Assembly (NCBI GenBank): GCA_965655095.1
Contig: OZ296650.1
Span: forward strand, 134,044,001-134,108,000
Length of the DNA stretch: 64,000 bases
Direction of reading: 5' to 3'
Source: Haplodiscus bocki
Lineage: Eukaryota
Shown: positions 26,446 to 60,923 of the stretch, piece after piece
How the letters are laid out: every line of letters begins with the position of its first letter
Position numbering within the stretch: the first letter of the stretch is position 1
The notes under the pieces: model-generated
What the model was told of the DNA's origin: nothing
The model's database searches: none
The model's input: only the letters and a program-made list of their open reading frames with translations
Program-made: the position numbers and the translations under genes

Positions 26446-27210
26446 ATGAGACATCTTATCATAGCTGATTCTCTTGGGAGAAGACTTGTGAGGAAGCACG
26501 AAAAGCTGGAAGTGAAGTTTTTTCCTGGTGCCACGGCATGCTGCCGTCGGGTAATTGACTGTCTAAGAAACCTCACAACGTTTTATGAATCAATCATTCT
26601 GTTCATTGGGGGAAACGGACTTACGAGCCGGGGTAGACAACGGGGAAAGACTCCTGAGCAGGTGAGTAATTTGTCCAACATATTGTCAAATTGGATGCGA
26701 ATGAAAACATTTTAGGAAAATAGTGGTTCCAACAACAGGGTTCTTTGTCTATGAATTGATACGCAGGTGATATTTCCCTCCGAAAGCATTTTCCTACTAA
26801 CAAGCAGATCTTCAATTGGAACTAAAAGTAGTTTCTTTTTTTTTCTCCAAAATTTGAATAAAGTTTGACAAAACCAAACGAAACGCATGTTCAGCTCAAA
26901 AAATTTCGTTAACTCTTAGGTGGTTCGAGACATTATGTACCTCGTGCGTCTGGCCACTCCAATGTGTTACAGAGTATACTGTCTGGCTCTAGTCATGAGA
27001 TCCAAACCGTGCCTCCTAGATATCAAAATTGTGAACGATGGACTCAGAAACTCTTCCGGTCCATAAAATTTTGTGTCTGTGGCTAGCAAAATGAGCTCCG
27101 AGAGGAATTTGATGGATGGCGTGCATTTATCTCGTCACGGTGTTTCCAACTTGATGTACATTCTAGGGAAAAGAGTTTTGGGTACTGTACTACGTTTTTC
27201 TTACCAGTGA
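26446..27210 (+). pseudogene. Two-exon SGNH/GDSL hydrolase-like gene with premature stop
   Basis: Exon 1 26446-26661 (IIADSLG, FPGA, IGGN), intron 26662-26919 (GTGAGT..TTAG), exon 2 26920-27210 (DGVHL). TAA at 27064-27066 where unit 3 has Tyr. Confidence 0.8.
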
Positions 27211-29545: not shown

Positions 29546-30307
29546 ACACTTAATTGAACCAACAAAACTCAAACAAATCTTATGTCAATCACTGTTGTGA
29601 TAATTTTTACTACAGTTACAAATACTTGATTACCGGTTCAACACAGGTATTAGAGACATTTAAAACAAGGTGCAATGAATCATTCAGCAAGCTACCGAAA
29701 GTTGTTTGCATGCAACATCGACTGTCACAAGGCATTCGACCGTAAGGTGTTTGCCCAAAACTAATAGATCAATTGTCGTTAAAGAAAATGAGAGTTGTCA
29801 TGAAGTGGATTTATTTTACGTGCATCCACTTGAATTTTCAAGGGTTGCTACTATTCATTTGCAGTTAAATTGAGATTTCATTTTGTTTTACTGGTCAACT
29901 TTATTTAGCACCGTTTAAGTTGTTTTCTGTAGTTGGTAACTATAAACTTCATTAAAAATTAAATGGGTCTCTCAGAGAAAAGTTTGTGTGCAGTTCCTTG
30001 TAACTAATCACCTCAAACCTAATTCAATGTCCGCTGAGACAAAAAAAAGTTGCTACAGTTATGTTTAAATATAACGTAATTTTCACAATTTAAATTACAA
30101 ACAATTCGAAATTTAAGGAAAAAACTGCAACGAGTTTTTATGGATGGGCCCTAGTAAGAACTTGTGTCACCGACAGTTTCGCAGCCGACTAGTTTAGCAC
30201 GAAATTTTAGCAAAGCTTCACTCGCGCCTCCAAAAAGTTGACGGATTTCAAATAGATCAAGTATTAAAACTGACTTTTTAGCGGGTTTTTCTTTTTTCTT
30301 TCACAAA

Positions 30308-30915
30308 GAATCATCATAACCGTCATTATTTTCGGCAATTTCACCTAAACTTTTTTTTGTCGCAAAGTTTTTTTTCTTTTGATACAGTTCCCGTCACGTT
30401 GTGACGAAAGCTCACATCACTTTTTCGACATCAACTTGGGAGAAATGACAAAATGCTCGATTTTGGCCTAGTTTTGACAACTTTGAAAGGTCATATCTCC
30501 TAGGGCAATAGGAGCTGGCCAAAAATTTTTGGCATGTAGGTAGTCCACAACAATTGTGCTTCATACAAAAAATTTCGGTCCATTGCTATGGATAAAGTGT
30601 GGAGATTTTGCGAAAAAAACATCGAAAATGGCCAAAAACCAGGATCATTGCGTCATATCTCCCCAACCAAAACAAAAACAATGATGTAGGTGCCAAAAAT
30701 CTTCATACATCGGCGGACTCTAGCCACATGCAAAGTTTGATCGAAATCGTATGGTTAGGTTTCGAGATCGTCTCCTTTTCGGCGGGTTCAGTGTAAGTGT
30801 AAACTTGATTTTTGAAGCTCGGCACAGGGCCCCTCCCCCGCCTCGCAACATGGTTTTGTGGGGCTAAAGAGCTAGACCACCCAGTGGAGGCGACGGTGAA
30901 AATTACCAGAAGGCG
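30308..30915 (+). repeat. Terminal module, unit 2
   Basis: Starts tcataaccgtcatt; ends GGGCCCCTCCCCCGCCTCGC...GACCACCCAGTGGAGGCGACGGTGAAAATTACCAGAAGGCG. Confidence 0.85.
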
Positions 30916-33900
30916 TGAGGTTTGAATCGGTGTTTCTTTCGTGTTCAGATTTATTTTCTGCGACAAACGGGCGTAGTCCTGTCATTGTGCGTCAGTCAAC
31001 GTGAAGCCGTGAAGCAGTATGTTGTCAATTTTTGTGACGAAGACGAAAAATGCCTTTTGGGCGGCAAATATTGACAAAATTATCGTCGTCAATCCTTATT
31101 TCAGATTGTTGTTCTAACTTCTATGTCTCCTGCATGAGAGGTAACTTTGTTTTCCTGTAGACGCACTGGATTTGCCGATGCAGTTTGGGAAAGGTGCAGT
31201 TAGGCGGTGAATACGAAGGGGCCGGAAGTATGCTGAGCAATGAACAGTTGTTATCTTGGAACAAAATATGTTTTTGTTAAAATTTAAGTTTAACAGTTAC
31301 TTTTTAATCTTTTCTTCAGCTACCAAAATTCTGGGTTTTTGTCCAATTCATTAGTAAAATTTATCTGTACTTAAAATATGAAAGGTGAGTAAAGTTTTGT
31401 TTTAACTCTAAGTTTTTATCCATACTTTTGCTGTTTCTTTTGGAGCTGTTCCCAGAAATTTTTTTGTCTCATTGCTGTTGTTGTTTCTTTAAACAAAGAA
31501 AAAACTTGACTGGTGTTCAATTACGCACTCCAAAGTTATGTTTGGATTCTGCCTTCGTGGAAAAAACAATAATTGTTTTGTTGTTTCTAATGTTTTCTGC
31601 AGGGATGAACTTGACAATGCAGCTTTGCAATGGGATACTAACATTTAGTGAACAAAAATCAGGATATTGGAAGCGGGTGGTCTCCACGAACCTTAAGCGT
31701 TGTTTGAACCTCGAAAATCACGAGCAAGTTTCTCCAGTTTCTCATACCTATGAGATTCATTTTCAAGGTTTTCAATGATTGTTATAACTTACATTGGTTT
31801 TTTGAAAAATGTGTCTGATTAATATCAACCACCCATTCCGCCGCTTTCGAAAATGAATTTCTGAATAGTTTTGTTGAATGAAATTTTAATGTTCAAAAAA
31901 AAGAGGCAACGGAATGATGACTTGTTTTTGATCGACACCAAATGCTATTTTTTTTCCGGGCTCAGGTGGAGTTTTTTATTGGAAACGTTGCACTACGCAT
32001 CTGGTAGGTAATTTATTTTTTTGTTGTTTTGTATTTTAATGGATAACACGATTCATCACAATCATTTCTTCAATTAAGGCTTCCTGCGCTGTAGCTGCTT
32101 CTTTTTGTTTGAATCAAGCGTTTCTTGACGGGAAAGGTCCGGTTTCCCCTTGTGTTGGCATGAAGTTTCACTAACCAATAATGTTTTTCAATCAGCACAT
32201 AAGTAGAAAAGTAAAGATGGCTACTGCACGCTTCCTCGTGGCTTCATGTTTTCGCGTTAATTCGCTTTCTTCATTTGTTTACAACGTTGTCCGAGCCAAT
32301 TTTCCCTAAATAATTACGTTTTTTATTCATGGCTTCCCATTGACATGACTGTCCTGCTTTTACGGTAAACATTTTTAAGAAAAGCACCCAACCTTTTTTT
32401 CCGCAATAATGTCTTCCTAAAAATAATTTCCTTTTTTGAAGACTGTACTGACAATTCGAAATTTCCGATATTTTCGCGAAACTAATAAGTTTCGTTAGTC
32501 CAGATTGAGTAACGAACGGGGCATTTCCTCAGCTATTTAATTCCATCACTTGTTCAACATTTTACCGAATTTCAGATTCGTCCTTCCCTTCTTTGACTTT
32601 TTCTTCCTGATTTTAAATTATAGAATTTCCAGAAGCAAATTATTGTTTTTTATTGTAGAGCTTATTATTTTATTCACAATGTTTTTCTAATTTTGCTAAT
32701 TCCCATCCTGATACTCTGATCCCCCAGAGTCATTTGGAATTTTGGTGGACGGAAGGCAATTCACTTCTGCAACCTTATGCTAGTTCTCTTACGACTGTTC
32801 ACATTAGCATCTGTTTCACCGCAGACATATATAAAACATCGTTAATGTTTGTAAAGTGATTGATTAAAAATAAAAACCTATTTCATCTTTAACTTCATAA
32901 ATATCTTTTATATGCGTAACTTTTTCTCACACGCAATGGCTGGCTTTGGCAGCCTTTTTCTGCGGAATAATATTTCCGTTAACTGCCAATTTTCTCACTT
33001 GGACTAGCCTGGTTGTTTAAAAGTCAATGCTTTCGAATCTTAAGGTCCACTTTGAGGCTCTTTCTTTCCTGCAGTGAAGATTTTATGAAATGGCTCCACT
33101 GCCAGAAATTCAAAATTTCAAATATGCTTTACTTGTAAAAGATCATCGGGAAGTGGATGTTCATCTAATTGTCAGTAGACGGAATCAAGACAATAAGAAG
33201 CCAAGGCGGGATAGCCATATTGATCAATGACTTTAACCGATTCAATTTTTCAAGTTCAATATGCAAACTATATCACAACGATTAACTGTGTCTGAATGAT
33301 GCTAGGCAGTTGGAATTGCACACAACTATGGCACTTTTTGAACATCCTTGATCCATTCTTTTTATGTTTTCATCAAGAGATTTCGTATCTGGAGCCTTGA
33401 AATTTTCCCCTCTGTTCCATCAACGTGCCTGTTCATCTATCACCGTTAACGAAAGGACATGAAATAAAACAACGAATAGAGTTTGCGGAATTTGTTACTA
33501 AGCTCTTGATTTCAAGAAGCTTTCCAACGTTGAAGTAATTTAAAAAAAAATACTAAATTCATTTTTATGACGCCTAAAGACTGTCAGTAGTGGTTTACGT
33601 TGTGTATTTCAATGAAATAGGCCGTGAATATATGATTTTGAGAATTTGTCGGAGAGAAAAGTGAATTCGACGGAGAATGATGGAAATGTAGAGCTTCCCA
33701 TTGTTCCTCCCAACTGAAACAAAATTTGTACCAACAATTATCTGTACCCCCTTATTTGTATGAAATTGTTATTCGATGCTTTTTTTAGACTGTCAAATTC
33801 TTGAGCTTTTTCGTATCTTAAATCTGGTCTCTTTTCGTCTTCTATACGACATTTTCTTCGAAACCTAGACTGATCTTTTCAACTTTACATCTGTTAAAAC

Positions 33901-34171
33901 AAGCTACTTACTTCATAGATGAAACAAAGGTACTGATTTTTTTGGGCCCTTGAATATAAAGTTTTTTTACCTGCAAAAACTGAATTGAATTGATGCCTGG
34001 TTTACACCAGTGAAAAAGACTACGAACCTCTGAAAACTTTGTTGGGTCTTAATTTACCCAACTTCAGTTACTTGGTGCCATTTTTTGCAAAAAGTTTTCA
34101 AGTTCCTAAGTGTTTTGTGAAACTGAAAAATTACGTTGTGTTCGATTGAAGTCAATACAACTGCTGAGGAA

Positions 34172-34209
34172 GCCTTGGTTTTGCTCCTGTGCGTTCGCAA
34201 AACCAAGGC
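34172..34209. promoter_or_regulatory. 13-12-13 inverted repeat (unit 3)
   Basis: Perfect GCCTTGGTTTTGC-tcctgtgcgttc-GCAAAACCAAGGC. Confidence 0.9.
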
Positions 34210-34470
34210 GTCTGGTTTATGAATGGTTGGAATTGAATTATGATTTTTTACAGTACTGCCTTATCTTTTTCGCGGCATCGAACCTGAAATTTAATTAGGC
34301 AGGCAACGGTTTGTAATTGAACCGTAAAAGACTTCGCTCAAACGACAATTTGATGTATTTACCTATTATACGAATTTCCCTGCTAATTCTTCAACGTGTG
34401 TTTGTATTGTAACATCTTGTTTTTTCATATAGTCATGATCCCACTGAATTAATGTCTGTTGTGTTTTACA

Positions 34471-37400
34471 ATGTCAAAACAAAACAACAAAGGAAACTTG
34501 AAGCGTCGTCGTTGTACTTCCTGTGGACAATTTGTTGGAGAACATCATGTGTGTGCAAAATCAATTGAGCTGGAACTTCAGGTCAACGAGCCTTTAGGAA
34601 TTTTATACAAAATTCCCGATGCATCAGTTGCTGTGTCACCTACCGCGAGAACGGAGATACACAGCTCGCTGAACACTTTGGGGTTGATGGACTTTTTAAA
34701 GCCTACAAAAACAGCTATCGGAAACGATACAGTTATCTGCTCCATGCAGCCAGTCCGGGTAACAGCAGTGCTTGGGGACGGTAATTGCCTTTTTTCTTCT
34801 CTGGCAGTTGCTCTGGGACTGTCACATGAATGTGGCCCAATCATACGTAACATTATTGTCAGCCACATGAATTTAATCAGTTTCCCCCCTAATAGCCTGC
34901 AAACATCTGTTTACTCCGATGACTTTCCCAACCAACATCGTGTTTTGAGTTGTACTTCCGTCGATGAGTACCTCCGCGAATCTAGAATGGCAGAAAATGG
35001 TGTTTTTGGAAGCTGTGTAGAAATATATTCATTTTGCCAAATCTTCAAAGTAGATGTTTTTTTGTACCATGTTCCATTCAAATCCTGGATGATTTATGAA
35101 TGTTCCTCCAACGTAAATAGAAAAGGAATTTTCATTCCACAAAACCGGAATGCAAATCACTTCGAGGTGATAACAGAGCTGGTTTCAATTGGTCCTGAAA
35201 GCTCCAGCTTATCGCAAGTTGCATCAATTAATCGCCCTCCTTCTCAATCAAGCGAAACTAATCATTGGAGTCAAGCCTTGCAGAACTGCGAAGGAACTGA
35301 AACTGAACCAGCTTCGAAAAAAAGCAAAGTCAATTCTGATTACACCTGGGAAGAGCACCCTGACCCGCTCGCATTAAGTCTCTTCGCCAATTCTGTATCT
35401 ACCAAAATGAAGAAACTTTCGGCCTTGGAAACATTATCAACAAATTCAACGAACCTCCCAAAGAACGATTGTTCACAAATGCTGGAACCCCCATGTTTTG
35501 ACTTTTCCCCAACAGATAGTGTTTCAGGAAATATGCACACGAACGGCGAGTGCCCAAATTTGGGCGGATGTGACTGTTGCGCAAAATGCATGCGCCAGTC
35601 AACAGTTCTTTACCCTTTAAAGTTGAAGAGGAAGAATAAATTTGATCTTAAAAACCGTGTGTTTGGAAACAAGCTAACGGAGCCCATTGTTGTTTTATGT
35701 AAGCTCTGTCTTCTCTATTGCACAACCGAAAGTTATGATTGGTACAATGCTTGGCCCTCTGTGTTTTTCAGCCTATTGAGTGATCAAGACATGCCAGTTA
35801 GAACCCAAATGGATATTTTGTCTTTGTTACCTTGGGAATTGAGACAGCAGTGGATGACATCCATGCACTACTTTCCCCTGTGCGTTCAAAGATGTCTAAG
35901 TCGGAAACGGATTGCTGGGAAATGTTCCGTTGATGGGACGCTTCGTTTGCGTCGTTTCCACGAACTCATGAAAACCTTGAAGCAGACTAACATTGCTCTT
36001 GCCCTGGACAATGAACCTTATCCCAACGTCCGCTGCCCATATGGGTGCTGGTGTTTCATTGAAGAATCAGGTTGGATACCCGCAAATCACTTCATCAATC
36101 TTTTTGAAAGAAACTTTACCTCGTTTCAGTCCTCCAGCTTCCTGCATCTAAGAGGAATTAGGTCCGACTTTTTGACACCATTTGTGTCCCTGCGCCAGTT
36201 CTTAGTAGCGACTACAGTGCGAGTTGATGAAAAAGCGGGACTCGTGGTTCAGGCTTGCTCCAGGCACTCAAGAGGCTCCAGTGTGCAGTACTTTCATCCG
36301 CCATCACATCCTTCGCTGGTGCGAACTACAGTGAATTATGAAGAACGTCTTAGTGCCATCGCACCCACATTGTCGTTCATCTCAAGCATAAAAGCCAACT
36401 TCGCCAGTCATACGTACCAATTGCTAAGAAGTGTTGGCTCTTACAGTGGAATGAGCACAGTCCGATTGAAGCGGAAAACGCGCTGGGATTTCACTAGTGA
36501 CATTTTGTATCATGCTGAAGGCGTCGCTTGTCATTTCAGAGAAGACATCAAAACAATGATTCGTGAGTGGGTAAGACAGGGTAAAATCCTTGATGACGTA
36601 GCTTCGGGAATGCTGGATTATGTACCGGACAAAAAGAAAGTCAACAGTTGTTTGTCACAGGCCACTTCAATAGACTTACAAACATGCCTGAACCTCACGA
36701 AAATAGTGGAAATGAATGAAAAAGAATATCTCAACAATGTTGAGTCGTTGAGTTGTTACACTCTCGTTCATGGGAATGATGATTACGGCTGCTCTCCACC
36801 TCCTCTGGAAAATAGAGTAAGCATAGTATCGTGGATTGTGCAGGCTGCAGTTTGTGTTTCCCCAATACTTTGTCGATCCTTAGTGAAATCATCAAAATAC
36901 AGTGTGACACTTAGGCCTTTGTTCACTTTACTCAGGAAAGTGTTGCTTGGCACCGCAAGAATGAATACAGCAAAAGTTTTATGGCTTGTTAGAAAATCCG
37001 AACAAGCAGTCTCAGCTGTCATAGAACAAACTAACACTGATGACAAAACAGAGGGAACAACCGACTGTTGTTGTTTTGTAGGAGCAAGGTTTCTTTCAGA
37101 AATTTGTGACACCATTCAACACGTTCCCTTAAACAAACGGAAGAATATCGGTTCAGCCACAACAGAGCAAGTTTCGTACAACATGACTCATGCCATTTTT
37201 ACGACAGGTTCCCCAAAAAATTTGCGGAACAAGGTGAAACCACCGTTAACCCTGATTATTTCCGACAATGAATTCGAATTGATTGCAGTTGGAACGAAGG
37301 ATGGAAGCAGCAAGGGAGAACCGAGGTGGTTGGTTAGACATGGAGGGAGGTTTCAGGGGTTTTGGCTCATTGAGAAAAGTAAAAAATTTGCCACAAAAAC

Positions 37401-40400
37401 AGAAGGCTCTCCGACTGATGCCCTGGAAACTTTCATTCGGGGTTATTGGACAATTGCAATTTATCAAAAGTCAAGAAATGTTGAATTGATTGATTTGAAG
37501 TGGAAATTTCTGAGCACTTTGACAGGTCAGGGTATTTTTATTTGTGCACATCACACAATTCCTTTAACAAGAGATTTCAGAAACAGTGGTTTCCAATGTA
37601 GATGTAATCGTGCATCGTTTTTGCGCTGCCCGCATTTGCAGTGCTACTCTTGCGTTTGCAAGCGTCTTTTCAATGAAGGTCTACAGCAGCAACACAGACG
37701 TATTTTAATTGATTCAGTACCGTTGGAGAAGTTAAATAAAACTAATTCCCCTTCTCTGGTATCGGAATCATCTTCGTCACGGGATTTTATTGAGCCCAAC
37801 AGCATGCCTGCAAATGAACCAATTCAACCAGATGCGGCAGCAGAAACGCTTGACATTGCATCAAGCAACAGTTCGTCCGTCAGTTATATTGTTCATCCGG
37901 AAACAAATGACGAAGAATTCGAAGATGACAACTTGAGAATAATGGCTACATTAAAAACCAACTCAGATGAAAAACTGATTTCCGTGGATCTTGAACGAAA
38001 AGAAGATGCCTTCAAACTACCGCTCCATATTCTTTTAAACTCACAATGCAATCTTCTTTATCGACGTAACGGGAATCCAATCAGCCTTTCTCTGAAAGAA
38101 AAACGTTTCCTGGAAAATATTTCAGCTGTTTCGACGTCTGCATTACCGCTCATTCAACCCGAAGCTCTTCTTTTTCCATCGATTTTTTGGTGTCAAGCTA
38201 GCAGCGGCAGTTTTCCAGGAGCAATACCAACGGCTTTATACAATTCATCCAAGTACAACAAACAGCTGGGTTTCGCCGGTTTGGATGACATGCTTCGAAC
38301 TCGAATCAAGGACGGCTCTCTTTTGACATCTTGCAATCCTACTTATTTGCAGTATGTGTTTGATTGCCTCTTGAACATGCAGCTTCATAAAAGTGACATT
38401 AGGATAATACTAAATCGAGGATGGCAAGAAGTTAATTCGGTTCCTCATAATTGCTCTTTTCTTTCGACTCAAACTTTCAAGTTTGATTGTGCCGAAAGTC
38501 GAAAAAATGTCTGCGAACTTGCGGCTTTGATTACAGACAAAAATCCAACCTACTTTGTGACATACACTTGTAGTCAATCGACCCACCCGGGGATTCGCAA
38601 AATCTTTGAAGCACTGCATGAAATGTATCCCGCAGAAACCACTCCAAAGGAAGTACTTGCAGCAGCAATTCAAGCTGAGCTCATGCCCATGCTCAGGTCT
38701 TGGTACCGCGCCTCTCAATATGTAATGGAATGGGTGAAAAATTCACCAGAAGAACCACTTGGTCCTGTGTCTCATATTTGGATGAGGTACGAATGGCAAG
38801 AAGAGACAGCTGGCTTTCCACACTTGCATGCTATATTGTGCACACCAGAAGATAAATTTAGTGATGATGTACGATCTCGAGTTTGCTGTTCAAAACAAAC
38901 GTTTTTGGGTGGCTTAGAAGTCAGTTGCCCCGAATTGAACGCAGTCGAACGTTTCCAACTGGGTAAACTTTACCAAAAGTATCAAACCCATAACTGTTCG
39001 AAAGGCCGTAAACGTTGCCATAAGAAGACAGACAGGCTGGACAAACCAATTTGTCGTGTACCTAAATATCCTCCTTCGAATTGTTTTTCTTTCAAGGAAA
39101 TTCCTGTGAACTTTTCCTGCGAAACAATGGGACTTCTGCGAGAAATGGAACTGGCAGACATAGATGAAAACTCGCTATTCCCAAAAGTGAAAGATCCTTT
39201 AACGGCCGGAAAACATCATTATCCCACTGTTTCTAACGAACATTATTCACCAACGAACGCTGCTCTTTTTGCTTTGACACAATCCAGCACCAATGTTCAA
39301 ATATGTGACGACTACATGGCCCCCCGCTACGTTGCAAAATATGCAGCCGGCATTGAATCTCGAGCAGTTGCCAAAATTGTTGCTGGTGAAACAGAAAATA
39401 GTGTCAAAGTTTTAACAGAACCAATCGCACATGAAAAAATAGCTGGGGTACAGGCTTCGCAAAAGAAAATGAGAGGCGATGAAAAACAAAAATCGGTAAC
39501 TGGTCGTGTGGTCAGCATAACAGAGTGTCTCTGGTGGTCCTTACAGCTTCCTTATGTCTGCACAAATGTCGATTTTGTTCACGTGCCAACTGTTCCCAAA
39601 GAAAATCGATCTGGAATTATCACTGAAAAACGCTTTAGCAATAAAATTAAGTTGGGCGCCACGTTTATGGAAGGAATCCGAGTTCGGAAACACGTTTTAC
39701 AACTTCCAAAGCACCGGCAGTTCACAAGAACACAAAGTTTTCTTCTTGCAGATGTTGAAAACAGCTCTATTTCGCCAGACAAAGTAACAGTTTTTGGACT
39801 CCGCCCACCTGAACTTTTGTTTGTCTCGAAGTTAAAAAATTACTACAGTTGGTTTGTTCGTTGTAAACCGCAAACAAAAAAATCCATCAGCAATCATGAA
39901 GTGTTCTTGAAGAGAAGCTTCCGCAGAAGTTGTTGGGTTGATGCATTGGGGTATTTGGTTAAACTACGCCCTTGTTCAGTGGACGCTTTCGTAAATTTCT
40001 GTCGTGCAAATGGTACCGATGGACGGGATGGGATTCTGAAACGCGAAATGAGAATACACATTGTTCCGTTGCTTGTGACGAAAAAAGCATCACAATTTGT
40101 TGCTCACTGGAAGCAGTTGTCCGAAGAAGATGCCGTGGTTGTTTTCAGTAACGTTTTGCCGAATAACCCAACTAAATTTCTACTACATGTGCTCTTGACT
40201 AATGGAGAATTTGACACAGAGATGGACATTCTGAACGTGCAGTCTTTCAAAGAAGCTTTCACAACAGCTAAAATTATTCCAAGCTGTAACATAAACGCCA
40301 AGACCGTGCAAAATTTAACACGGAATTATTTGCTGAAACAGCTGCGTTTTGTACCTGGGTCCTCGAAACTAATTGACAAATACCTTTTAATGGCTCACAG

Positions 40401-42528
40401 TGTTCTTTCAGAGGCTCTGTTAGTAAACATCCTTTATTTCGCTGCTGCGCTACCGCCTGTGCTGGACAGAAGTGTCATTGAAGAATACGAAGAATCACTA
40501 GCAGTGCAAATCAGTATGGAAAAATGCAAAATGGTAGCTTTTCTTCACACTTGTCAGAAACAATTACCTACTGAGCAGGCGATGCTAGATGCAACCATCA
40601 CCGTCCCTTTACCTTGGAAACCAGTCATTCAGAAAAGCCCGGATCAATGTCGAAACTCTTATACGGAACAGAAGAGTGTATTAAACAAACTGTTGAGTTC
40701 CATCGACATTTATAAAGAAGGACTTTGCAGTTTCATCAGGCATCAAATTGTCTTTGGACCTCCAGGAAGTGGGAAAACTTTCGTTGTGCTAAAATCGCTT
40801 GCATATGCTTTATGCCAAGGTCTCAACTGTGTAGTGACATCTTTGGCTGCTGAAAGATCTGCCGCTTTGGCTGGAAAACATCTGAATGCCCTCATCCCAT
40901 TTCCAGTGGAAAAACACGCTTCTGCAGAATCGCTCTCGAGAACAGCCCTGTCCAACCTACAACGATCTCCTATTAAGAGCCGCTTTCTGCAAAATCTACA
41001 CGTTCTTTTCGTGGAGGAATTGTCAATGATTTCTAGCGAACTTTGGGCTGCCACGGATTATGTGCTTCAGGTTATCACAGCAAACTATGTTCCATTCGGT
41101 GGGAAACTTGTTATTGCAACCGGAGATTTCTTCCAACTTCCTCCACCATCAGGATCTTGTTTGATGAGTTCTTCTTTTCCTCTCACAACGTTCACTTTTC
41201 TCAAACTGGAAAATTTCGTTCGCATGCAAAACAAAAATGGCCAAGAACTGTTGTCTTTGTTGTCAGCGACTCCAAAAACTGACGGCAATGCGAGGCGTAT
41301 CTGGGAAATTATCGGTAAAGGTTGCAATTTTGTCCATTCATGGAAAGACGTGCCGAATGATAGAATTCGAATTTTTGCCACTCGACAAGCAGAACGTAAA
41401 GCAACTGAAGACAAAATAATCGATGTTAAAAACAGCGGTACCCAATTTTATGAAAATGCGGCAATTGATGAAATGTGCGTTTCAAGCACTGACAACTGGA
41501 CCGAGGCGTCGCCAAGTACATCAAAATTTCTCAACAAAAAGTGTCTTGAACCCCAGTCGTTGTTTCTGTACCCCGGAGCCATTTTACGACTAACAGTGAA
41601 TATGCCATCTATATCCGCGTATCAGGGTCAACTCTGTGTTCTGCTTTCTTTGGATACAATTCAGAATGGCTCTGTGACAATTGCTCTAGCACCAGCTGGT
41701 TGCCGAAGTATTCCACCGCTTGTTGTGATCAAAAACAAATGGCGTTGTGTTGTTATCGGCAAAGAAACTGGTGTTACCTACCGATTAAACCACAAAACGG
41801 TTTGCAGACGAATCCAGTTTCCACTAAATTTATTTGTTGCGTCAACCATTCATAAGACAATGGGTGAAACGCTTCCGATGGTCGCAACCCAAATAGTTGG
41901 ATCGAAAGACTTCGCTTTGTGGCTTCCCGAACAACTCTATGTTGTAATGAGTCGAGTAAGAAGTCTGAATCAGGTGACTTTTGTTGGATCGAAGGAATCT
42001 AACAAACGAGCAGTCTTGGATTTAGTCTGCAAAAATTCGCAATGGGCTGAACTCACGAATGAAATTTTGACTAAAAGTTCCGCTGGTGACCCTACAATTG
42101 ATCATGCAAGAGCATCTCCTTTTCCCCCTTCAATGAGAGAACTACCCGTTCAAAATGTGGGCTTCTGTTACTTGCTCCAAAGTGAACCACAGCAGCACCT
42201 TCTGTACATTGGCTCCACTATGTCGTTAGTGCGTCGTTTGCGAGAGCACAATGCAGGACTGGGTTCCTCCTTCACCAAGGTACAAAATCGTTTGCCCTGG
42301 ATGGTTTGTGCTTATGTTACTGGTTTCAATTCGATTAATGCTTCAGAGAGAATCCGAGCATTCGAGAAGGAGTGGCTGAATGCGGCAACACACTACGTCA
42401 ACGCAAAAAAGAAAAATGTGTCACTTCCCACAGCTATCAATTTGGGGGAAATTGTCGCAAAAAATTGGCTATACAAAGAAGATGATTTGAAACTAGTAGT
42501 GTGCTGCAGGTCATCAACTGTGTCTTGA
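34471..42528 (+). CDS. Intact ~2685-aa RepHel-type transposase: Zn knuckle, OTU protease, Cys-rich region, HUH/Y2 Rep, Pif1-like helicase, GIY-YIG nuclease
   Basis: OTU GDGNC (34774-34788) and NHF (~35158). Rep FVTYTC (~38554), YEWQEETAGFPHLH (38788-38829), YVAKY (39328-39342). Walker A GPPGSGKT (40756-40779), EELSM (41014), GDFFQLPP, TIHKTMG, QLYVVMSRV. GIY-YIG GFCYLL..LYIGST..RRLREHN..W...FEKEW (from 42160). Confidence 0.93.
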   Translation: MSKQNNKGNLKRRRCTSCGQFVGEHHVCAKSIELELQVNEPLGILYKIPDASVAVSPTARTEIHSSLNTLGLMDFLKPTKTAIGNDTVICSMQPVRVTAVLGDGNCLFSSLAVALGLSHECGPIIRNIIVSHMNLISFPPNSLQTSVYSDDFPNQHRVLSCTSVDEYLRESRMAENGVFGSCVEIYSFCQIFKVDVFLYHVPFKSWMIYECSSNVNRKGIFIPQNRNANHFEVITELVSIGPESSSLSQVASINRPPSQSSETNHWSQALQNCEGTETEPASKKSKVNSDYTWEEHPDPLALSLFANSVSTKMKKLSALETLSTNSTNLPKNDCSQMLEPPCFDFSPTDSVSGNMHTNGECPNLGGCDCCAKCMRQSTVLYPLKLKRKNKFDLKNRVFGNKLTEPIVVLCKLCLLYCTTESYDWYNAWPSVFFSLLSDQDMPVRTQMDILSLLPWELRQQWMTSMHYFPLCVQRCLSRKRIAGKCSVDGTLRLRRFHELMKTLKQTNIALALDNEPYPNVRCPYGCWCFIEESGWIPANHFINLFERNFTSFQSSSFLHLRGIRSDFLTPFVSLRQFLVATTVRVDEKAGLVVQACSRHSRGSSVQYFHPPSHPSLVRTTVNYEERLSAIAPTLSFISSIKANFASHTYQLLRSVGSYSGMSTVRLKRKTRWDFTSDILYHAEGVACHFREDIKTMIREWVRQGKILDDVASGMLDYVPDKKKVNSCLSQATSIDLQTCLNLTKIVEMNEKEYLNNVESLSCYTLVHGNDDYGCSPPPLENRVSIVSWIVQAAVCVSPILCRSLVKSSKYSVTLRPLFTLLRKVLLGTARMNTAKVLWLVRKSEQAVSAVIEQTNTDDKTEGTTDCCCFVGARFLSEICDTIQHVPLNKRKNIGSATTEQVSYNMTHAIFTTGSPKNLRNKVKPPLTLIISDNEFELIAVGTKDGSSKGEPRWLVRHGGRFQGFWLIEKSKKFATKTEGSPTDALETFIRGYWTIAIYQKSRNVELIDLKWKFLSTLTGQGIFICAHHTIPLTRDFRNSGFQCRCNRASFLRCPHLQCYSCVCKRLFNEGLQQQHRRILIDSVPLEKLNKTNSPSLVSESSSSRDFIEPNSMPANEPIQPDAAAETLDIASSNSSSVSYIVHPETNDEEFEDDNLRIMATLKTNSDEKLISVDLERKEDAFKLPLHILLNSQCNLLYRRNGNPISLSLKEKRFLENISAVSTSALPLIQPEALLFPSIFWCQASSGSFPGAIPTALYNSSKYNKQLGFAGLDDMLRTRIKDGSLLTSCNPTYLQYVFDCLLNMQLHKSDIRIILNRGWQEVNSVPHNCSFLSTQTFKFDCAESRKNVCELAALITDKNPTYFVTYTCSQSTHPGIRKIFEALHEMYPAETTPKEVLAAAIQAELMPMLRSWYRASQYVMEWVKNSPEEPLGPVSHIWMRYEWQEETAGFPHLHAILCTPEDKFSDDVRSRVCCSKQTFLGGLEVSCPELNAVERFQLGKLYQKYQTHNCSKGRKRCHKKTDRLDKPICRVPKYPPSNCFSFKEIPVNFSCETMGLLREMELADIDENSLFPKVKDPLTAGKHHYPTVSNEHYSPTNAALFALTQSSTNVQICDDYMAPRYVAKYAAGIESRAVAKIVAGETENSVKVLTEPIAHEKIAGVQASQKKMRGDEKQKSVTGRVVSITECLWWSLQLPYVCTNVDFVHVPTVPKENRSGIITEKRFSNKIKLGATFMEGIRVRKHVLQLPKHRQFTRTQSFLLADVENSSISPDKVTVFGLRPPELLFVSKLKNYYSWFVRCKPQTKKSISNHEVFLKRSFRRSCWVDALGYLVKLRPCSVDAFVNFCRANGTDGRDGILKREMRIHIVPLLVTKKASQFVAHWKQLSEEDAVVVFSNVLPNNPTKFLLHVLLTNGEFDTEMDILNVQSFKEAFTTAKIIPSCNINAKTVQNLTRNYLLKQLRFVPGSSKLIDKYLLMAHSVLSEALLVNILYFAAALPPVLDRSVIEEYEESLAVQISMEKCKMVAFLHTCQKQLPTEQAMLDATITVPLPWKPVIQKSPDQCRNSYTEQKSVLNKLLSSIDIYKEGLCSFIRHQIVFGPPGSGKTFVVLKSLAYALCQGLNCVVTSLAAERSAALAGKHLNALIPFPVEKHASAESLSRTALSNLQRSPIKSRFLQNLHVLFVEELSMISSELWAATDYVLQVITANYVPFGGKLVIATGDFFQLPPPSGSCLMSSSFPLTTFTFLKLENFVRMQNKNGQELLSLLSATPKTDGNARRIWEIIGKGCNFVHSWKDVPNDRIRIFATRQAERKATEDKIIDVKNSGTQFYENAAIDEMCVSSTDNWTEASPSTSKFLNKKCLEPQSLFLYPGAILRLTVNMPSISAYQGQLCVLLSLDTIQNGSVTIALAPAGCRSIPPLVVIKNKWRCVVIGKETGVTYRLNHKTVCRRIQFPLNLFVASTIHKTMGETLPMVATQIVGSKDFALWLPEQLYVVMSRVRSLNQVTFVGSKESNKRAVLDLVCKNSQWAELTNEILTKSSAGDPTIDHARASPFPPSMRELPVQNVGFCYLLQSEPQQHLLYIGSTMSLVRRLREHNAGLGSSFTKVQNRLPWMVCAYVTGFNSINASERIRAFEKEWLNAATHYVNAKKKNVSLPTAINLGEIVAKNWLYKEDDLKLVVCCRSSTVS

Positions 42529-42626
42529 AAAGTCGTACTTTAGGAGAAAGCTGCCCAAAAACTTATGGATTAGTTTGAGATAATTGTTTTACTTGCACAC
42601 AAACTTCCTTGCCTTGACAGCCATAC

Positions 42627-42772
42627 GCATCGACTGCATAGTGATGCAATGGTGAATTTCTCTTTATGTTATGCTGCAACCGCATCGGCTGCAGAGTGAT
42701 GTACCAAGTAGCACGTGCAGCAACATCAACCTTTTTGCTGGAAAATATAATGCCTCGACTGCATAGTGTTGC
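42627..42772 (+). repeat. Three 21-nt hairpin repeats after polyprotein stop (unit 3)
   Basis: gcatcgactgcatagtgatgc (42627), gcatcggctgcagagtgatgt (42682), gcctcgactgcatagtgttgc (42752). Confidence 0.8.
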
Positions 42773-43105
42773 ATTATCTATTTTGCAGTTGAGATGATTT
42801 GTTGCTAATCACTTGTCTGTGTCTGTTTAATTCATTAGTTTGATGGGATTCACTTTCACTGAACCTGATTTGATGGACTTTGATTTTGGAAGCACTAGAA
42901 AGAGTCCATTTAAAAAAGCGCCGTTAATTTTGGACAATAGAAATCAGCTAACTTTCAAGTTTTTTCGGGAAAAAAATATAATCATACGTTAAATGACGAA
43001 TTTTGACATTGTTGATTGAAGCACTCTTGTTACTGTATCCCCGTATTCGGGGATGATACCTGAAGCTGCAGAAACCGACGTTTTTCACAGTGCTTCCAGA
43101 TCATT

Positions 43106-43858
43106 ATGGCTCATTTGATCATAACCGACTCTCTGGGCGTACAACTGGAAGGTGTGCTTGAAAATTTGGCAGTTAAAAGTTTTCCTGGCGCCAGAGCGGC
43201 GGACCGACGTGTAACGAGTTTCCTGGAAAATTTGCGGCGCCGCTTCCAATCCATTACAATTTTCATTGGAGGGAATGGCCTTTCCAATTGGGGCCGGCGT
43301 CCAGCTGAAAGTCCAGAACAGGTAAAGCTTAAGTGATGGTTCATGGGGTTACTGTTTGCAAAATCAAATTAGACGCTAGTAAAATTTGGAACGTTTTTGT
43401 GTATTGTTAAACCCTTTATTGAAGTACGTTTAGTAAAAATCTAGGAAAACGTTGTTTTCAATATTAAGTCTTTCTACTGGTACTTTAACTGGTGCTACTT
43501 GCAAACTATAATTGAACCGTAACTTTGTGTTTTTAATGTCTCAACAGTACTTCATTTGCTTTTGTTGTTTTATTATTAGGTGTTCCATGATATCTTGAAC
43601 CTTGTGAGAATTGCCGAGAGAAAATGCGACAAAGTATACTGCCTGGGCTTAGTAATGCGAAGCCGACCGTGCTTCCTTGCAGTGAAAGAAATAAACCGAA
43701 TGCTGCGAACATCCATTGGACACTACACTTACGTTTCCGTGTCATCTAAGATGTCATCTGAAAGAAATCTTAAAGACGGAGTGCATCTGTCTCAGCACGG
43801 CGTGACGAACATCCTGTGGATTATAAAAAGACGGATTTTAGGTAACAAATGTGTCTAG
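43106..43858 (+). CDS. Two-exon SGNH/GDSL hydrolase-like protein, 164 aa, intact
   Basis: Exon 1 43106-43321, phase-0 intron 43322-43579 (GTAAAG..TTAG), exon 2 43580-43858. Blocks IITDSLG, FPGA, IGGN, DGVHL give the S-G-N-H signature with DxxH. Confidence 0.85.
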
Positions 43859-44342
43859 CAGTACATTAAGATGTTGAAAAACAGTATTGATTCCAGTAAT
43901 TTGCGGTTGATATCAACTTTCCAGCAATTGAATGTTTCTAGCTTTAAACTCTTTGGAATTTACCTATAGAAGGTTTACGTTTTTTCCATAAACTTCCATT
44001 CTAACACCAATGTCGTTTAGGACACTCAATCAGGAGACTCTCCCATCGCAAAAACCGCTACGTCCACTGGAAGTGGTGAAGATCCGGCCCTGTGTTGTTG
44101 TAGGCTTCATTTGGACATTTCTGGAAAATGGAATTACAATCTTGGTCGTTGCACCTATGTTTCGAATACTCTTGGTAGTTTTTTCATGATGACACAATTT
44201 TGAAACTTTTTTTGGTGGTACCATTAAAAACAAACAAAGGTGCTTTTTTGGTTTCCAATAATCTTGGCCAATTGACGCCGCTAACAGTGTTTTAATTTTG
44301 TTTTCGTGTCCTCTTCGATTTGTAATTTGTCAGTGATAAAAT

Positions 44343-44548
44343 TGTAAAAAAGCTCGACCGCATGGTGGCCTCTACTTCTTTGAAGTTTTGAATTTTTTTT
44401 GTTCCACACACCTTGCATTTTGGCGTACATTACAACATATTTATTATTTTAAACTTTGTCTTCATGCCTCATTCAATTTAAAGTTGGTTTGTGATGACGT
44501 TGTAAGGAGTTCAACCGCATGGTGATCTGTACCTCTTTGAATTTTTGA
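44343..44548 (+). repeat. Imperfect ~48-bp direct repeat, ~158-bp period
   Basis: accgcatggtggcctctacttctttgaagttttga versus accgcatggtgatctgtacctctttgaatttttga. Confidence 0.6.
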
Positions 44549-45300
44549 TGCTTCGTTGTCATTGGAACATTTTTTTAATGGTCGCCGTCCGCTATTAGTC
44601 GTCACAATTCCTTCATGTTTTCGCTGAAATAGTGTACTCCATAGTTACATTGTTTGTTAAAAACTTTTGGTAGTTTAAAATTTCGAAAGTGATCAACTAA
44701 CCTCGGCCATACTGTTACAAGGATTGTTCATATTATTTTGAATAAAGTTTTCTTTTGAAATGTTTGTTCTTATATTCGCAAAAAACGTTATAGCAAACAT
44801 TGTGCAGCTTTGAGCTCGTATTAAACTTCAGTTGTCGAACATCTGCAATGAAGATATAATTTATAATCCTTAACTTTCTACAAGTTTTGTAGACAGGAAA
44901 AAAACCGATGTAATAACGATGTATTTGAATGCATTGCTCACCATTTTTTTTCTTTTGCCTTGAGTGTTACTGATCGATAAAGCGTGATGCGTTGAACAGT
45001 AAGATAACTGTAAATGTAACATAACATTTCGATGAAATAAACTTAATGATAAAGAAGATTTGAGAAATGTGAATAATTGAGAAACTTGTCATGCTTTTTT
45101 GAAAAACAGGTTGCTTTACTTGAAGCAATAGCGCTAATTCACTGGATTAAATGCTTGAAACCAAAATTACTTGCCTGTTGACTTCATTGAACCTTATAGG
45201 AAAATGCGTTCACAGAATCTTTAAAAAAGGAAAAAGCATGGTTTTGAATGTTCCAATTGTTCAATTCTCAGGCAGCTTCAACCACGTTTGATTTCAGACT

Positions 45301-46311
45301 ATGACAACTCAAGTGAACACCTCCCAAGTAACAGCACCAAATTTTTTGCGACGAAGCGAAAATACATTCGTCAGAGGTATCGTTCTAGTAATTAAGAAAT
45401 ACGACAAACCTTTGCAGTTGTTTAGACCGCAAAATATCAAAAACAAGAGAGGTGCCCTCGATACCAGCTGTGATCGATTAGTCATACTAGGCGAGATCAA
45501 TTCAAAAGAATGCTTTGCTGTGATTGCGGAGTCTGCACAGAAAAGCTATTTTTTGTTCGGGGACACTCTGTTAACAGTAGGGTCAATTGTGGACGTAAAA
45601 GAACCTGTGTTCTCGAACTCTTGTCTCGGCAATGACCGCAGTAATCCAATTTTTCATGTCTTTCTTCCTTTGGAAGTCGTGGTTAACAATATTCCATTGT
45701 TGCCAATTCCCATAGATCTCCACCCATCAACGACAGCAATGTTTCACTTTTGCTTGCCAAACAGACCCCTCACCTTCTTACAAGCAGGTGCTGTAGCTCC
45801 AACTTGCTCAGGCTTCATGTGTGACAGACGAGAAAAACGAATTGACTCTGTATGCCCCTGTATACAGAAATCTCCTGTTTCAGCTTGGGTAATGTGCGCC
45901 CGAATTGTCAGTCGTGACATCGAAAATGAAGACGAAGATTCCCTCACGGGAGAAATGATACAAAGTCTTAACCTGACAAAACTGTTTTGCAGCGAAGCAA
46001 TTATTAGAAGTTCATATGCATCAATCGATTCGCAACAACTGCGGATTGCTGTTAACCAGGTGTCCCAATTTGTAAATGAGAATGGTGGTTGGCAGGTATG
46101 TGGATTTTAAAAAAGTGGATCCACAGACGAAAATCTTGCACAAAACGTACAACGTGTCCGCATTTGCAAAATTACGCCTGCCGTTGAAGTTCCTTTTAAC
46201 TTGAAATACAACATTGTGCCATGCAACGCCAATATTGGCAATGAGCCCCCAGCTTTGCAACATGCGGATACTAACGTCGGTGCTCCTAACAATCCGAACA
46301 ACGTACGATAG
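45301..46311 (+). pseudogene. 336-codon accessory gene with one nonsense codon
   Basis: Near-identical to 11320-12330; TAC>TAA at 46108-46110; frame continues to TAG at 46309-46311. Confidence 0.85.
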
Positions 46312-47335
46312 CTGATCTAGACTTACTCCTCAGATGACCGTTCTTTCTCCACCGCATGAACTGCTTGCTGGTTTTCAAAACCAATCTCTCCTTTCGCAAT
46401 CGACCGCAAGGTGGTTGCTGAAAAAAACATGCACAAATTAACAAGTTTCGGAAAAAAAGTCAACTGATAAAGTTGTCCTCGTTCTTTCATACCACAATTT
46501 GTTCTCCTCCTTTTCAATCTTGAAACCTATGCTTCAATTTTCTTGTTAATGATAAAGTTTAACTTTCCAGTACTTATCAGTACCCAAAGGTTAATTGTTG
46601 GTTTTTGTGGAACTGTAAACACTAATGTCAAATTACAAATTAGTTGTTGTTGAACAATGGAAATTAGTTTGCAACTGCCGACGACTTGTCTCTGTAAACC
46701 TACGTTTTTCAGTAGCTTAGAACATTGTGCTAATTCGTGTGGCTTTTGAGTGTGGTTTATTGGTTCGTGTAGAAGTTGTGAACTTTTTATGTTATGCAAT
46801 TAACTTCTTTCTTGTTATGTTAAACATTACTATCCGTTCATGACCGAACGTTTTGAACTTTGAAACGCTGGCTTGCTCTTCCATCGGTCGAAGTGCACGC
46901 TCTCAGTTCGTTGCTTGACGTTTGATACAGTGTTGTAATTTTCGCTAACAGAAGAATGGGATCAAACTTTCATACGAAATTTTAGGGAAATTTTTTTCTG
47001 AAGTCCATACAGGTTCATTTGGTTCATTCGGGTTGTTTTCACAAAGTAACAGCTGGGAACCTACTGCCTACAAATTGACAACATTGATGCGAAACTTTTT
47101 GAGAAAGTTAAAACACTTTCGCTGGTCAAATTTTGAAAGTATTCGTTCGGACAAAAATTTTAGTTTTCCTTCCCAGAAACTCATCAAACTTGAAGTTGTT
47201 TGTTAAAGGAACAGTTGCTCTCCGAGAATTGCGGGCAAAAATTCCTGCCGACGTTTCACCATACGCCTGTTTAAGTGTTATATTCAAATTCTACAGCAAA
47301 AATTGATTTTTTTCTGATTTTTGTTTTTTTTTCCA

Positions 47336-47950
47336 AAAAATTCGTCATAACCGTCATTTTTTTCGGCAAAGTGGCCGAAACTTTTTCATCTTCGGAAAAT
47401 TGCCTTTGAAGTTATGGAGTCGATTTCATACTGGAGCCACTCCAGAGGGCAAACTATGCACTTCAATGTGGGAGCTATGACGAAATGGTCGATTTTCGGC
47501 ATTTTTTTCCAACTTTGATCCGTCATATCTCAACACCTATGACGAGTTGGTAGAAAATTTTTTGCATGTGTGTAGCCCTTAGTTATACTGCTTCACACGA
47601 AAAGTTTCGGCCAAATGCATGTGGTTCCTTGCAGGGCTGTCGGTAAAAAACTGCAAAATGAGGCCAAAAAACAGAATCATCTCGTCATAATTCCCCAACC
47701 ATTTTTGCTAGAATGATCTAACTTGCACCATTGTTCTTAGAATTGAAAGTTATGCCCGCATGCAAAGTTTGATCAAAATCGTATGGGTGGGAGCTGAGAT
47801 CGTTATTTTCCTATACCGTATTTGCATAGAGTTATTTCTTATATTTTAACGCGAGGCAAAGGGGCCCCTCCCCCGCCTCGCCTGGACCTATGAGGGGCGT
47901 AATCCCGTGACCACCCAGTGGAGGCACCGGTGAAAATCACCAGGTGGCGG
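47336..47950 (+). repeat. Terminal module, unit 3
   Basis: GCGAGGC-aaaggggcccctccccc-GCCTCGC hairpin (47851-47881), CCACccaGTGG, GGTGAaaaTCACC. Confidence 0.85.
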
Positions 47951-48995
47951 TCACTGGTTATGCCATTCTGAAATTTGAACAAATTTGCTAGTGTTTTCTT
48001 TCAACACAGTAATGATTTTTGCAAATGCAAATTTTATATATTGAAATTTAGCCTGTGAAAACTTTACCGATCTGGATGACACATCCATGATGGAGCTTGC
48101 AAACATTTTAGCCCCGTTGTTTCTCCGTGTCGCTTCGCTAATCTACGAAACAACGGGGCGGGGCAATTAACATTTTGGCAATTGTGGTGAATTTTTTAAA
48201 CAGAAATGCATCAAAGTTTGATTTTTTTTCGCAGAATGACTTTTACTCCAAATTTTACCCCAAGTTGAAGAATCATTTGCACCAAAGCAGTTTGCGAAAA
48301 AAATCCGACCACAAAAATATCAGAAACGAACTCTACGGGGAAAATTGAGTTTTCTGCTAAAAAATTTTTTTTTTTCGGAAAATTCGTCATAACCGTCATT
48401 TTTTTCGGCAAACTGGCCAAAACTTTTTCATCATCGGAAAATTATCTTTCAAATTATGCAGTCAATTTCAGACTGGAGCCAGTCCAGAACGCAAGCTACG
48501 TACTTCAATGTGGGAGCCATGACGAAATGGTCGATTTTCGGCATTTTTTTCCAAATTTCATCCGTCATATCTCCACACCTATGACGAGTTGGTAGAAAAT
48601 TTTTTGCATGCGTGTAGCCCTTAGTTATTCTGCTTCACACAAAAAGTTTCGGCCAAATGCATGCGGTTACTTGCAGGGCTGTCGGTAAAAAACTGCAAAA
48701 TGGGGCCAAAAAACAGAATCATCCCGTCATAACTCCCCAACCAATTTTGCTAGATTGATCTAACTTGCACCATTGTTCTTAGAATTGAAAGTTATGCCCG
48801 CATGCATAGTTTGATCCAAATCGTATGGGTGGGAGCTGAGATCGCTAATTCCCTATACCGTTTGTGCATATTTGTTTTTTTCTTATATTTTAACGCGAGG
48901 CAAAGGGGCCCCTCCCCCGCCTCGCAAGGACTAATGTGGGGCGCGATCCCCTGACCACCCAGTGGAGGCGACGGTGAAAATTACCAGATGGCGGG
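47951..48995 (+). mobile_element. ~1.05-kb non-coding mini-unit (non-autonomous derivative or terminal duplication)
   Basis: ~430 bp of unique sequence with a 13-bp hairpin, then a second terminal module (48378-48995). Confidence 0.65.
48111..48159. other. Perfect 13-bp GC-rich hairpin
   Basis: GCCCCGTTGTTTC (48111-48123) and GAAACAACGGGGC (48147-48159); 23-nt loop containing CGCTTCGCT. Confidence 0.8.
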
Positions 48996-60827: not shown

Positions 60828-60923
60828 AAAACTCTATCAGAGACTTTGTTGTCAAAATTTTTTTCGATCGTTACTTTGCTTCTCTACGAGTCCAAAATTT
60901 TTTCAATGCACTGACAAACAAAT

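Follow-up and report, generated by a model that had tools for sequence, protein, structure and literature searches.

A probable Helitron-like rolling-circle transposon with a C-terminal GIY-YIG nuclease domain in a concatemeric array of Haplodiscus bocki

We analyzed a 64-kb stretch of Haplodiscus bocki DNA (64,000 nucleotides [nt]; GenBank assembly GCA_965655095.1, contig OZ296650.1, positions 134,044,001 to 134,108,000; hereafter the window), which self-BLAST resolves into four diverged long units and one short unit arranged head-to-tail in a single orientation. Unit 3 (u3; 30885..47918, 17,034 bp) is complete and bounded by copies of a junction decamer, and we regard it as probably an autonomous Helitron-like rolling-circle transposon that is laid out like a Helentron and forms part of a concatemer of related elements. 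An earlier note on this DNA had proposed a multi-gene rolling-circle element of ~17 kb; the HUH-Y2 Rep domain, the PIF1 helicase and the length of the unit bear it out. Besides its polyprotein, u3 carries a spliced, probable SGNH esterase gene and a gene for a predicted RPA-like protein. Unless a contig is named, coordinates are those of the window, and all features given with coordinates lie on the + strand except where noted.

Domains of the Rep-helicase polyprotein

The polyprotein open reading frame (ORF) of u3 (34471..42528) runs uninterrupted for 2,685 amino acids (aa) in the order OTU, Cys-rich region, Rep, PIF1 helicase, GIY-YIG. The reading of the locus as an OTU-Rep-helicase-GIY-YIG polyprotein is thus confirmed by an intact ORF and by Pfam, PDB and profile matches, and residue conservation was scored in an alignment of 11 full-length homologues at 25-52% identity. 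In the HUH-Y2 Rep nuclease domain (38008..39630), the two histidines of the HUH motif (H1451/H1453, nt 38821-38829) and the two tyrosines, four residues apart (Y1620 and Y1624, nt 39328-39342), are invariant in the 11 proteins; Pfam Helitron_like_N matches 10 of them, weakly in u3 (1e-5) and at 8.7e-11 in the best of the relatives. The PIF1-family SF1 helicase (40588..42030), with its Walker A motif GPPGSGKT at nt 40756-40779, is matched by Pfam PIF1 (5.5e-11 in u3; present in 11/11 proteins) and by PIF1 in the PDB (5e-13), and both Walker A and Walker B are conserved in the alignment.

The polyprotein ends in a GIY-YIG nuclease domain (42103..42450; Pfam, 3.5e-9) that is found in all 11 homologues. 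Its best solved matches are structures of SLX1 (5.5e-9 to 2e-8), and the SLX1 RING finger is absent. Residues Y2567, Y2579, G2581, R2589, H2593 and E2632 are invariant, and N2594 is conserved. Exo_endo_phos, the AP endonuclease domain, was not found in any of 14 scanned proteins, and the earlier note was therefore right that GIY-YIG occupies the position that the AP endonuclease holds in Helentrons.

At the N terminus lies a predicted OTU cysteine-protease domain, deubiquitinase-like (34648..35265), with a DGNC box at residues 103-106 and a histidine at 230. Pfam detects it weakly in u3 (7e-4); a profile of the N-terminal ~300 residues built from 11 relatives matches OTUD3 at 3e-9 and further matches OTUD2/5 and viral OTUs. 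Alignments of the relatives show no variation at the catalytic Cys and next to none at the Asp and His. The ~730 residues between OTU and Rep (35518..37710) contain invariant Cys/His clusters and have no Pfam match, DUF6570 included. This region is retained in metagenome relatives (1e-60 to 1e-149), and we presume that it binds zinc and DNA. As judged from the alignments, the catalytic residues of all the enzymes in this five-domain protein are conserved, being invariant or nearly so.

Units, junctions and copies of the array

Unit ends were counted from the base following one junction decamer (GACCACCCAG) to the end of the next. Unit 1 (1..13978) has its 5' end outside the window; unit 2 (u2; 13979..30884) spans 16,906 bp; u3 is followed by a short non-coding unit of 1,044 bp (47919..48962), whose 5' and 3' ends are the same as those of the long units; and unit 4 (48963..64000) has its 3' end outside the window. 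The short unit looks like a non-autonomous, HINE-like partner. The 17-mer GACCACCCAGTGGAGGC is invariant and occurs once per junction (four matches in the window against 0 expected), and across lineages the decamer GACCACCYAG is the sole fully common core of a 13-sequence junction alignment. To the right of the decamer ~35 nt are conserved from TGGAGGC, where downstream-unit-specific sequence starts; in u3 this is the 5'-terminal sequence (30885..30920), which resembles a left terminal sequence (LTS) and is common to long and short units. Around u3 copies on other contigs, and likewise in another lineage (L003), upstream-unit-specific sequence stops before CCAC and downstream-unit sequence is fixed from TGGAGGC on. 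The earlier note had the right period in placing the unit at 30916 to 47950, and only its boundaries shift: the joint lies ~32 nt further left, inside the decamer or at its end.

On the left of the decamer is a conserved GC-rich stretch of ~65 nt with inverted repeats (GCGAGGC...GCCTCGC; GGGG...CCCC), the latter ending ~11 nt before the C-Y-A-G end. In u3, this stretch and the decamer (47909-47918) close a 3' non-coding region of ~630 bp (47287..47918) that is common to the short units. Helitrons end in a hairpin followed by CTRR, which the GC-rich repeat and C-Y-A-G end resemble, and a 3' hairpin structure is plausible from the sequence. In three lineages represented by single contigs (L001, L003 and L004), genes and terminal module are on opposite strands. 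Rfam recognizes no RNA family in the window or the junction module, and a reading of that module as a ribozyme or small RNA was considered and dropped.

The 5' non-coding region of u3 (30921..34171, ~3.3 kb) differs between units, has no ORF conserved between them and is 99% conserved among copies of u3. It is followed, ~260 nt upstream of the polyprotein ATG, by a palindrome with a 13-bp stem (GCCTTGGTTTTGC / GCAAAACCAAGGC; 34172..34209, no strand assigned) whose sequence is nearly invariant across all four units. Folded as single-stranded DNA (ssDNA), the palindrome reaches -15.6 kcal/mol (z = -5.0; 0/200 shuffles were equally stable). It was not found in lineages other than the window units.

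Copies of these elements are numerous. Clustering at >=90% identity, that is, at least 90%, gathers 165 polyprotein and 140 RPA-like sequences on many contigs. Copies of u3 occur in three contigs of one European Nucleotide Archive (ENA) assembly (L005, L006 and L007), matching it at 96.7-99.4% identity across all 17 kb, with the 3.3 kb of non-coding 5' sequence included. Their company differs: upstream stands either unit 2 or short units, and the downstream neighbor is a short unit, a unit-2-like element or another kind of unit, 1.36 kb long. The switch of neighbor falls at the decamer, and these different neighbors with breaks at one point show that the units are discrete and joined at one site. 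Likewise, in L003 an autonomous unit of 12.1 kb stands in phase between short units of 1,435 bp, and the short-unit family of the window is tandemly repeated in L006 and L007.

The genes of the other window units are in various states. Unit 1 has a polyprotein with three frame breaks, a deleted esterase region and an intact RPA-like gene (11320-12330); unit 2 has its polyprotein in three ORFs, an esterase gene (26446-27192) with an in-frame stop and an RPA-like gene (28535-29545); and the polyprotein of unit 4 (52777-60827) has one break. In the 3.2 kb downstream of the latter, up to the window end, the esterase and RPA-like genes were not found. Between units, the ratio of nonsynonymous to synonymous substitution rates (dN/dS) of the polyprotein is 0.06-0.12, with synonymous sites near or beyond saturation; in comparison with unit 2, dS is saturated and inestimable, and dN is 0.26-0.50 for all three genes. 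These substitution patterns indicate that the gene set is under purifying selection. Together with relatives in other assemblies, they substantiate the earlier observation that the same gene set recurs in diverged units.

We considered whether the array might instead be an old tandem duplication of a single insertion or of a host gene cluster that diverged in place, with units that are not independently mobile. All units do share one orientation and a similar length, and the whole u2-u3 block recurs in L005 at 96.7% identity, so some growth by block duplication or multi-unit copying has occurred. Neutral decay in place is nevertheless incompatible with ORFs of 2,000-2,700 aa that persist, and with conserved proteins (dN/dS ~0.1) at saturated synonymous sites; moreover, u3 recurs at 99% identity beside varied upstream and downstream units with the break at the decamer, and more than 100 close copies are spread across many contigs. 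We therefore consider duplication in place improbable as the origin of the array and favor discrete, mobile units.

Several further features of the arrays were recorded. Units 1 and 3 are 87.5% identical over their 3' 3.2 kb (10820-14010 versus 44802-47950), but over the polyprotein their identity falls to 66-76%. The units thus have a mosaic make-up, suggestive of recombination between lineages. Units 1 and 2 alone have in common a non-coding 5' stretch of 1.1 kb (9-1114 versus 14750-15846; 73%), whose similarity is equal in all six frames, making a coding character unlikely. The segment of unit 4 after its polyprotein (60828-64000) has no similarity to the remaining units. The window has a G+C content of 40% and a CpG observed/expected ratio of 0.87, showing no strong CpG depletion although its content is all repeats. 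In L003, arrays of the 1,435-bp non-coding units lie on either side of the 12.1-kb unit (1-9001 and 21064-27104). L007 (21,555 bp) consists of a u3 unit (17,046 bp), three short units of 1.05 kb and one L003-type unit of 1.36 kb, all joined at decamers; the L003-type unit (88% identity) follows the u3 unit, and short partners of one lineage thus occur inside the arrays of another. The name of this contig carries the suffix "_c" and those of the others "_l", suffixes that we read as circular and linear; L007 would be a collapsed array or else a genuine circle of several units. Beyond the terminal repeats, a satellite of ~360 bp occurs in L001 (13330-14860) and L002 (12260-13800 and 17540-18730). 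The possibility that the elements are inserted in host repeats, either a satellite or tandem RNA genes in the way that R2 occupies ribosomal DNA, was rejected because short and long units have both ends in common and are decamer-joined in phase, and because long units have no split monomer beside them.

Accessory genes and distribution of the family

The gene at 45301..46311 (336 codons) encodes what the earlier note could call only an unknown protein; the gene is real and recurs in units 1 and 2, and its product can now be identified by fold. Sequence searches of Pfam and PDB returned no match, whether with the single sequence or with a 71-member alignment. A profile search gathered 422 representatives of the family, and no Pfam domain was found in the 71 that were scanned. 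With the resulting deep alignment, AlphaFold2 (AF2) modeled the protein at a predicted local distance difference test score (pLDDT) of 89.9; a shallow alignment of 10 sequences had given 33, and the distant relatives from the profile search were needed. Foldseek matches the model to RPA (3e-5 at probability 0.98) and also to RPA70, CST and bacterial SSB, and in a viral library to baculovirus LEF-3. The model contains two OB folds with a four-Cys cluster at the second (C169/C174/C185/C187), in which C174 and C185 are invariant and C169 and C187 nearly so, recalling the zinc ribbon of RPA70. On the strength of this model, we identify the protein as a diverged, predicted RPA-like ssDNA-binding protein with tandem OB folds. 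A nonsense codon (46108-46110) interrupts the u3 copy, while the gene is open in units 1 and 2 as well as in L005-L007. In L009, the intact RPA-like gene (7387-8430) is found upstream of the polyprotein, from which no decamer separates it, and only degenerate RPA-like fragments lie downstream (20485-20956), so that the gene order may differ there or a junction may have been lost.

Between the polyprotein and the RPA-like gene lies a gene of two exons (43106..43321 and 43580..43858) separated by a phase 0 GT..AG intron with a polypyrimidine tract (43322..43579). Exon 1 encodes blocks I (TDS), II (PGA) and III (GGN) of an SGNH hydrolase and exon 2 block V (DGVH) and the stop codon, so that the spliced product of 164 aa has four SGNH blocks in order. 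The four blocks align in u2, u3, L009 and L010, and the intron position is kept in unit 2 and in L009, a lineage at 61% identity from another assembly. Searches used an intronless relative from L010 together with a profile based on fragments, and the single exons as queries. Four of the six PDB matches to the profile are SGNH enzymes, the best being 4c1b, the zebrafish long interspersed nuclear element (LINE) ORF1 esterase (E = 0.018, full length), followed by two GDSL lipases and then PAF acetylhydrolase. The L010 relative matches Pfam Lipase_GDSL_2 at 0.0026, below the curated cut-off, and the single exons had no match in Pfam or PDB sequence searches. The spliced esterase proposed earlier thus stands as a gene with two exons, a conserved intron and four blocks; its family match is marginal, and from motifs and profile we call it a probable SGNH enzyme. 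It may act on lipids, as has been proposed for LINE ORF1 esterases.

The esterase was seen in only units 2 and 3 of the four. In unit 1, comparison of 10420-10820 with u3 42494-44802 shows that a segment of ~2.3 kb containing it is missing, leaving only ~850 bp between the polyprotein stop and the RPA-like gene. Other lineages have a different, "type B" gene in the middle position (L001, 8228-8800; L003, 17920-18546; L004, 1786-2355), encoding 190-210 aa with the motifs IGASSL and HDVISNS and lacking any Pfam or PDB match. Equating type B with the esterase (type A) was not demonstrated (hhalign against type A, E = 0.08; no Pfam match). L010 has a type B gene between the polyprotein and the RPA-like gene (20734-21300) and an intronless type A esterase after the RPA-like gene (25262-25843); as it carries both small genes, the two types are paralogous or unrelated, not orthologues.

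We drew close and intermediate relatives from ENA assemblies and distant ones from JGI metagenomes. All the ENA relatives (34-96% identity) have the polyprotein first, then a small gene and then the RPA-like gene; most of them again form arrays. The JGI scan yielded 38 loci at 24-31% identity, whose gene content we scored with hidden Markov models (HMMs) built from the family alignments. GIY-YIG is present in 15/15 metagenome contigs that reach the C terminus (Pfam-confirmed in three), and the RPA-like gene in 10 of the ~12 with sufficient flank, on either strand; two distant RPA-like homologues were uninformative on linkage, their contigs being too short. OTU was seen in two metagenome contigs and is frequent in the branch sampled here. 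The HMM scan found the esterase in none of these distant relatives. This linkage makes Rep-Hel-GIY-YIG with the RPA-like gene the conserved core of an old clade. The earlier suggestion that the accessory genes are core components therefore holds for GIY-YIG and the RPA-like gene and fails for the esterase, which is missing from the distant relatives and, as far as the window shows, from units 1 and 4; the esterase is a lineage-restricted, recent addition.

The same data bear on whether u3 is a canonical Helitron or Helentron in which GIY-YIG, the esterase and the 336-aa gene are passengers without a role. Helitron-like elements often capture host sequences, the HELIANO study calls a moss GIY-YIG "captured" (PMC11417382), and the esterase has the patchy occurrence described above. 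For the esterase alone, passenger capture is plausible. As an account of all three genes it is unlikely, given that every relative, down to 24% identity, has GIY-YIG as an in-frame fusion whose catalytic residues are invariant, and that the RPA-like gene is linked in most informative metagenome contigs and constrained.

We find it very unlikely that the units are an integrated or episomal virus-like replicon, that is, a Rep-encoding circular DNA that replicates as a concatemer and uses OTU and the esterase for host interaction. Such a replicon could account for the circular label of L007 with its five decamer-joined units and for the similar lengths of u2 and u3, and OTU and SGNH esterases do occur in viruses, as does the LEF-3 fold matched by the RPA-like protein. 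No unit, however, encodes a capsid, packaging or polymerase gene, and IMG/VR contains no relative. Nor did the near-constant unit length on which the earlier note had leaned hold up, since units range over 12-19 kb across lineages (12.1 kb in L003, 16.9-17.0 kb in the window and ~18.8 kb in L004). The "circular" contig is one long and four short units, as an assembler yields from a repeated array, and the remaining copies are all in contigs of up to 1.5 Mb. The virus-like proposal of the earlier note is accordingly not supported.

Comparison with known elements and proposed mechanism

Helentrons (HLE2) have an AP endonuclease fused to the C terminus of RepHel, often with OTU and an RPA ORF of ~350 aa; they show 3' stem-loops, 12-15-bp sub-terminal inverted repeats, insertion at TT and short non-autonomous partners that share their ends, and their termini are nearly identical between families that are <70% identical (PMC4067079). 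RPA is a classic accessory gene of Helitrons and Helentrons (PMC4067079, PMC11417382), and DUF6570 upstream of Rep has been proposed as an HLE2 marker (PMC11417382). Like Helentrons (the mite Helentron-Mo and those of fish), the H. bocki elements combine Rep-PIF1 and a C-terminal nuclease with OTU, a separate RPA-like ORF and 3' palindromes, and they too have near-identical termini across diverged families and short partners (HINEs). OTU and the RPA-like gene are therefore ordinary Helentron components. Unlike Helentrons, the H. bocki elements have an SLX1-like GIY-YIG domain in place of the AP endonuclease, an OTU domain fused N-terminally to a protein of ~2,700 aa with a large Cys-rich region, an added, probable SGNH esterase gene, an RPA-like protein too diverged for Pfam and no DUF6570.

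The earlier note had allowed that GIY-YIG-bearing Helitron-like elements might already be catalogued, and one is: HelenSM92, an HLE2 family of Sphagnum magellanicum, has a GIY-YIG described as "captured" (HELIANO, PMC11417382). There, too, the nuclease travels with Rep-Hel; HelenSM92 is a capture in a single moss family and the domain here is clade-wide, C-terminal and in frame, a distinction drawn from description only. Some Helitron2 elements have genes inverted relative to their ends (PMC3627910), as in L001, L003 and L004, and Helitron-2_CRe as well as Helitron-1_DR have hairpin-bearing ends, as is plausible here; in contrast to Helitron2, the candidate inverted repeat here is only 6-7 nt. 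Head-to-tail joints and tandem arrays are recognized marks of rolling-circle transposition (PMC5876387). With Helitrons and Helraiser the elements share an HUH-Y2 Rep with PIF1, precise head-to-tail joints, tandem arrays (PMC5876387) and a 3' end in which a hairpin (here a candidate one) is followed by ~11 nt ending in C-T/C-A-G (compare CTRR), and they differ from Helraiser in a protein almost twice as long with extra enzymatic domains. The esterase resembles that of ZfL2-1 LINE ORF1 (PDB 4c1b), a compact SGNH fold of ~165 aa that is also encoded by a mobile element and aligns over the four catalytic blocks; in the present DNA transposon it forms a spliced gene of its own rather than a domain of a retrotransposon RNA-binding protein. 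Penelope-like retroelements are eukaryotic mobile elements that also have a C-terminal GIY-YIG, a likeness noted at the level of the nuclease fold; they encode a reverse transcriptase where these elements encode Rep-Hel. What is new here is the clade-wide GIY-YIG, the probable esterase of LINE type and the way in which long and short units, though unrelated, are strictly concatenated at one decamer.

Several points weigh against assigning u3 to an autonomous Helentron-type transposon. The elements were placed by layout and domains and not by a Rep-Hel tree against reference sets, and we file them as working like Helentrons, not as proven members. DUF6570 was not detected in the 14 proteins scanned (E <= 0.01) or, with the looser limit of E <= 1, in residues 311-1310 of u3; Rep has no sequence match to Helraiser, to which similarity is confined to the helicase (3e-5). 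The sub-terminal inverted repeat (GAGGCG/CGCCTC) does not exceed 6-7 nt, against 12-15 bp in Helentrons. No junction with host DNA was found here, by which the exact ends, the target site (TT in HLE2) and any target-site duplication would be established. The 3' inverted repeats show compensatory change in just three pairs, and their fold is no stabler than that of shuffled sequence. The nick would fall inside the decamer or on its 3' edge, the finest placement that the aligned junctions give. The esterase call draws on marginal E-values (0.018 and 0.0026) and motifs, and the activity of every domain is predicted from sequence. Even so, an autonomous Helitron-like transposon of Helentron-type layout remains our preferred reading, and it is reasonable to regard these elements as a distinct lineage within Helitron-like elements, a view to which the metagenome relatives lend weight.

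By analogy with Helraiser and Helentrons, we propose the following mechanism. Rep would nick the element strand at the decamer and become covalently attached through a tyrosine, and the helicase would peel the strand 5' to 3' while the RPA-like protein coats the freed strand. The GC-rich 3' region could serve as the termination signal, at which a circle would form with a precise 3'|5' joint. GIY-YIG, in place of the Helentron AP endonuclease, might nick the target strand or cut branched intermediates. Because existing joints carry the Rep recognition sequence, we propose that new units enter there; alternatively, several units may be copied by read-through, and mixed head-to-tail arrays would arise either way. 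OTU and the esterase would have auxiliary roles.

More tentatively, these elements may represent a deep, widespread and as yet unnamed branch, "GIY-YIG Helentrons," which would have gained its nuclease independently of the AP endonuclease and would integrate preferentially into its own 3'|5' joints. Different autonomous lineages and their short parasites would then assemble concatemers in common, and circles of several units may persist as extrachromosomal replicons; we hold this wider picture as a doubtful possibility.

That a second, unrelated nuclease is fixed clade-wide at the Helentron endonuclease position speaks for an additional strand-cutting activity being required when this branch transposes by the rolling circle, and the GIY-YIG domain is a compact enzyme with which to test that need. 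The RPA-like family, with 422 representatives and no Pfam model, suggests that annotation pipelines may under-call Helitron accessory genes. Through the probable LINE-type esterase that it has recruited, a DNA transposon has an accessory function in common with an unrelated class of mobile element. Finally, the invariant decamer and the mixed arrays offer a concrete substrate for studying Rep origin, terminator and target choice.

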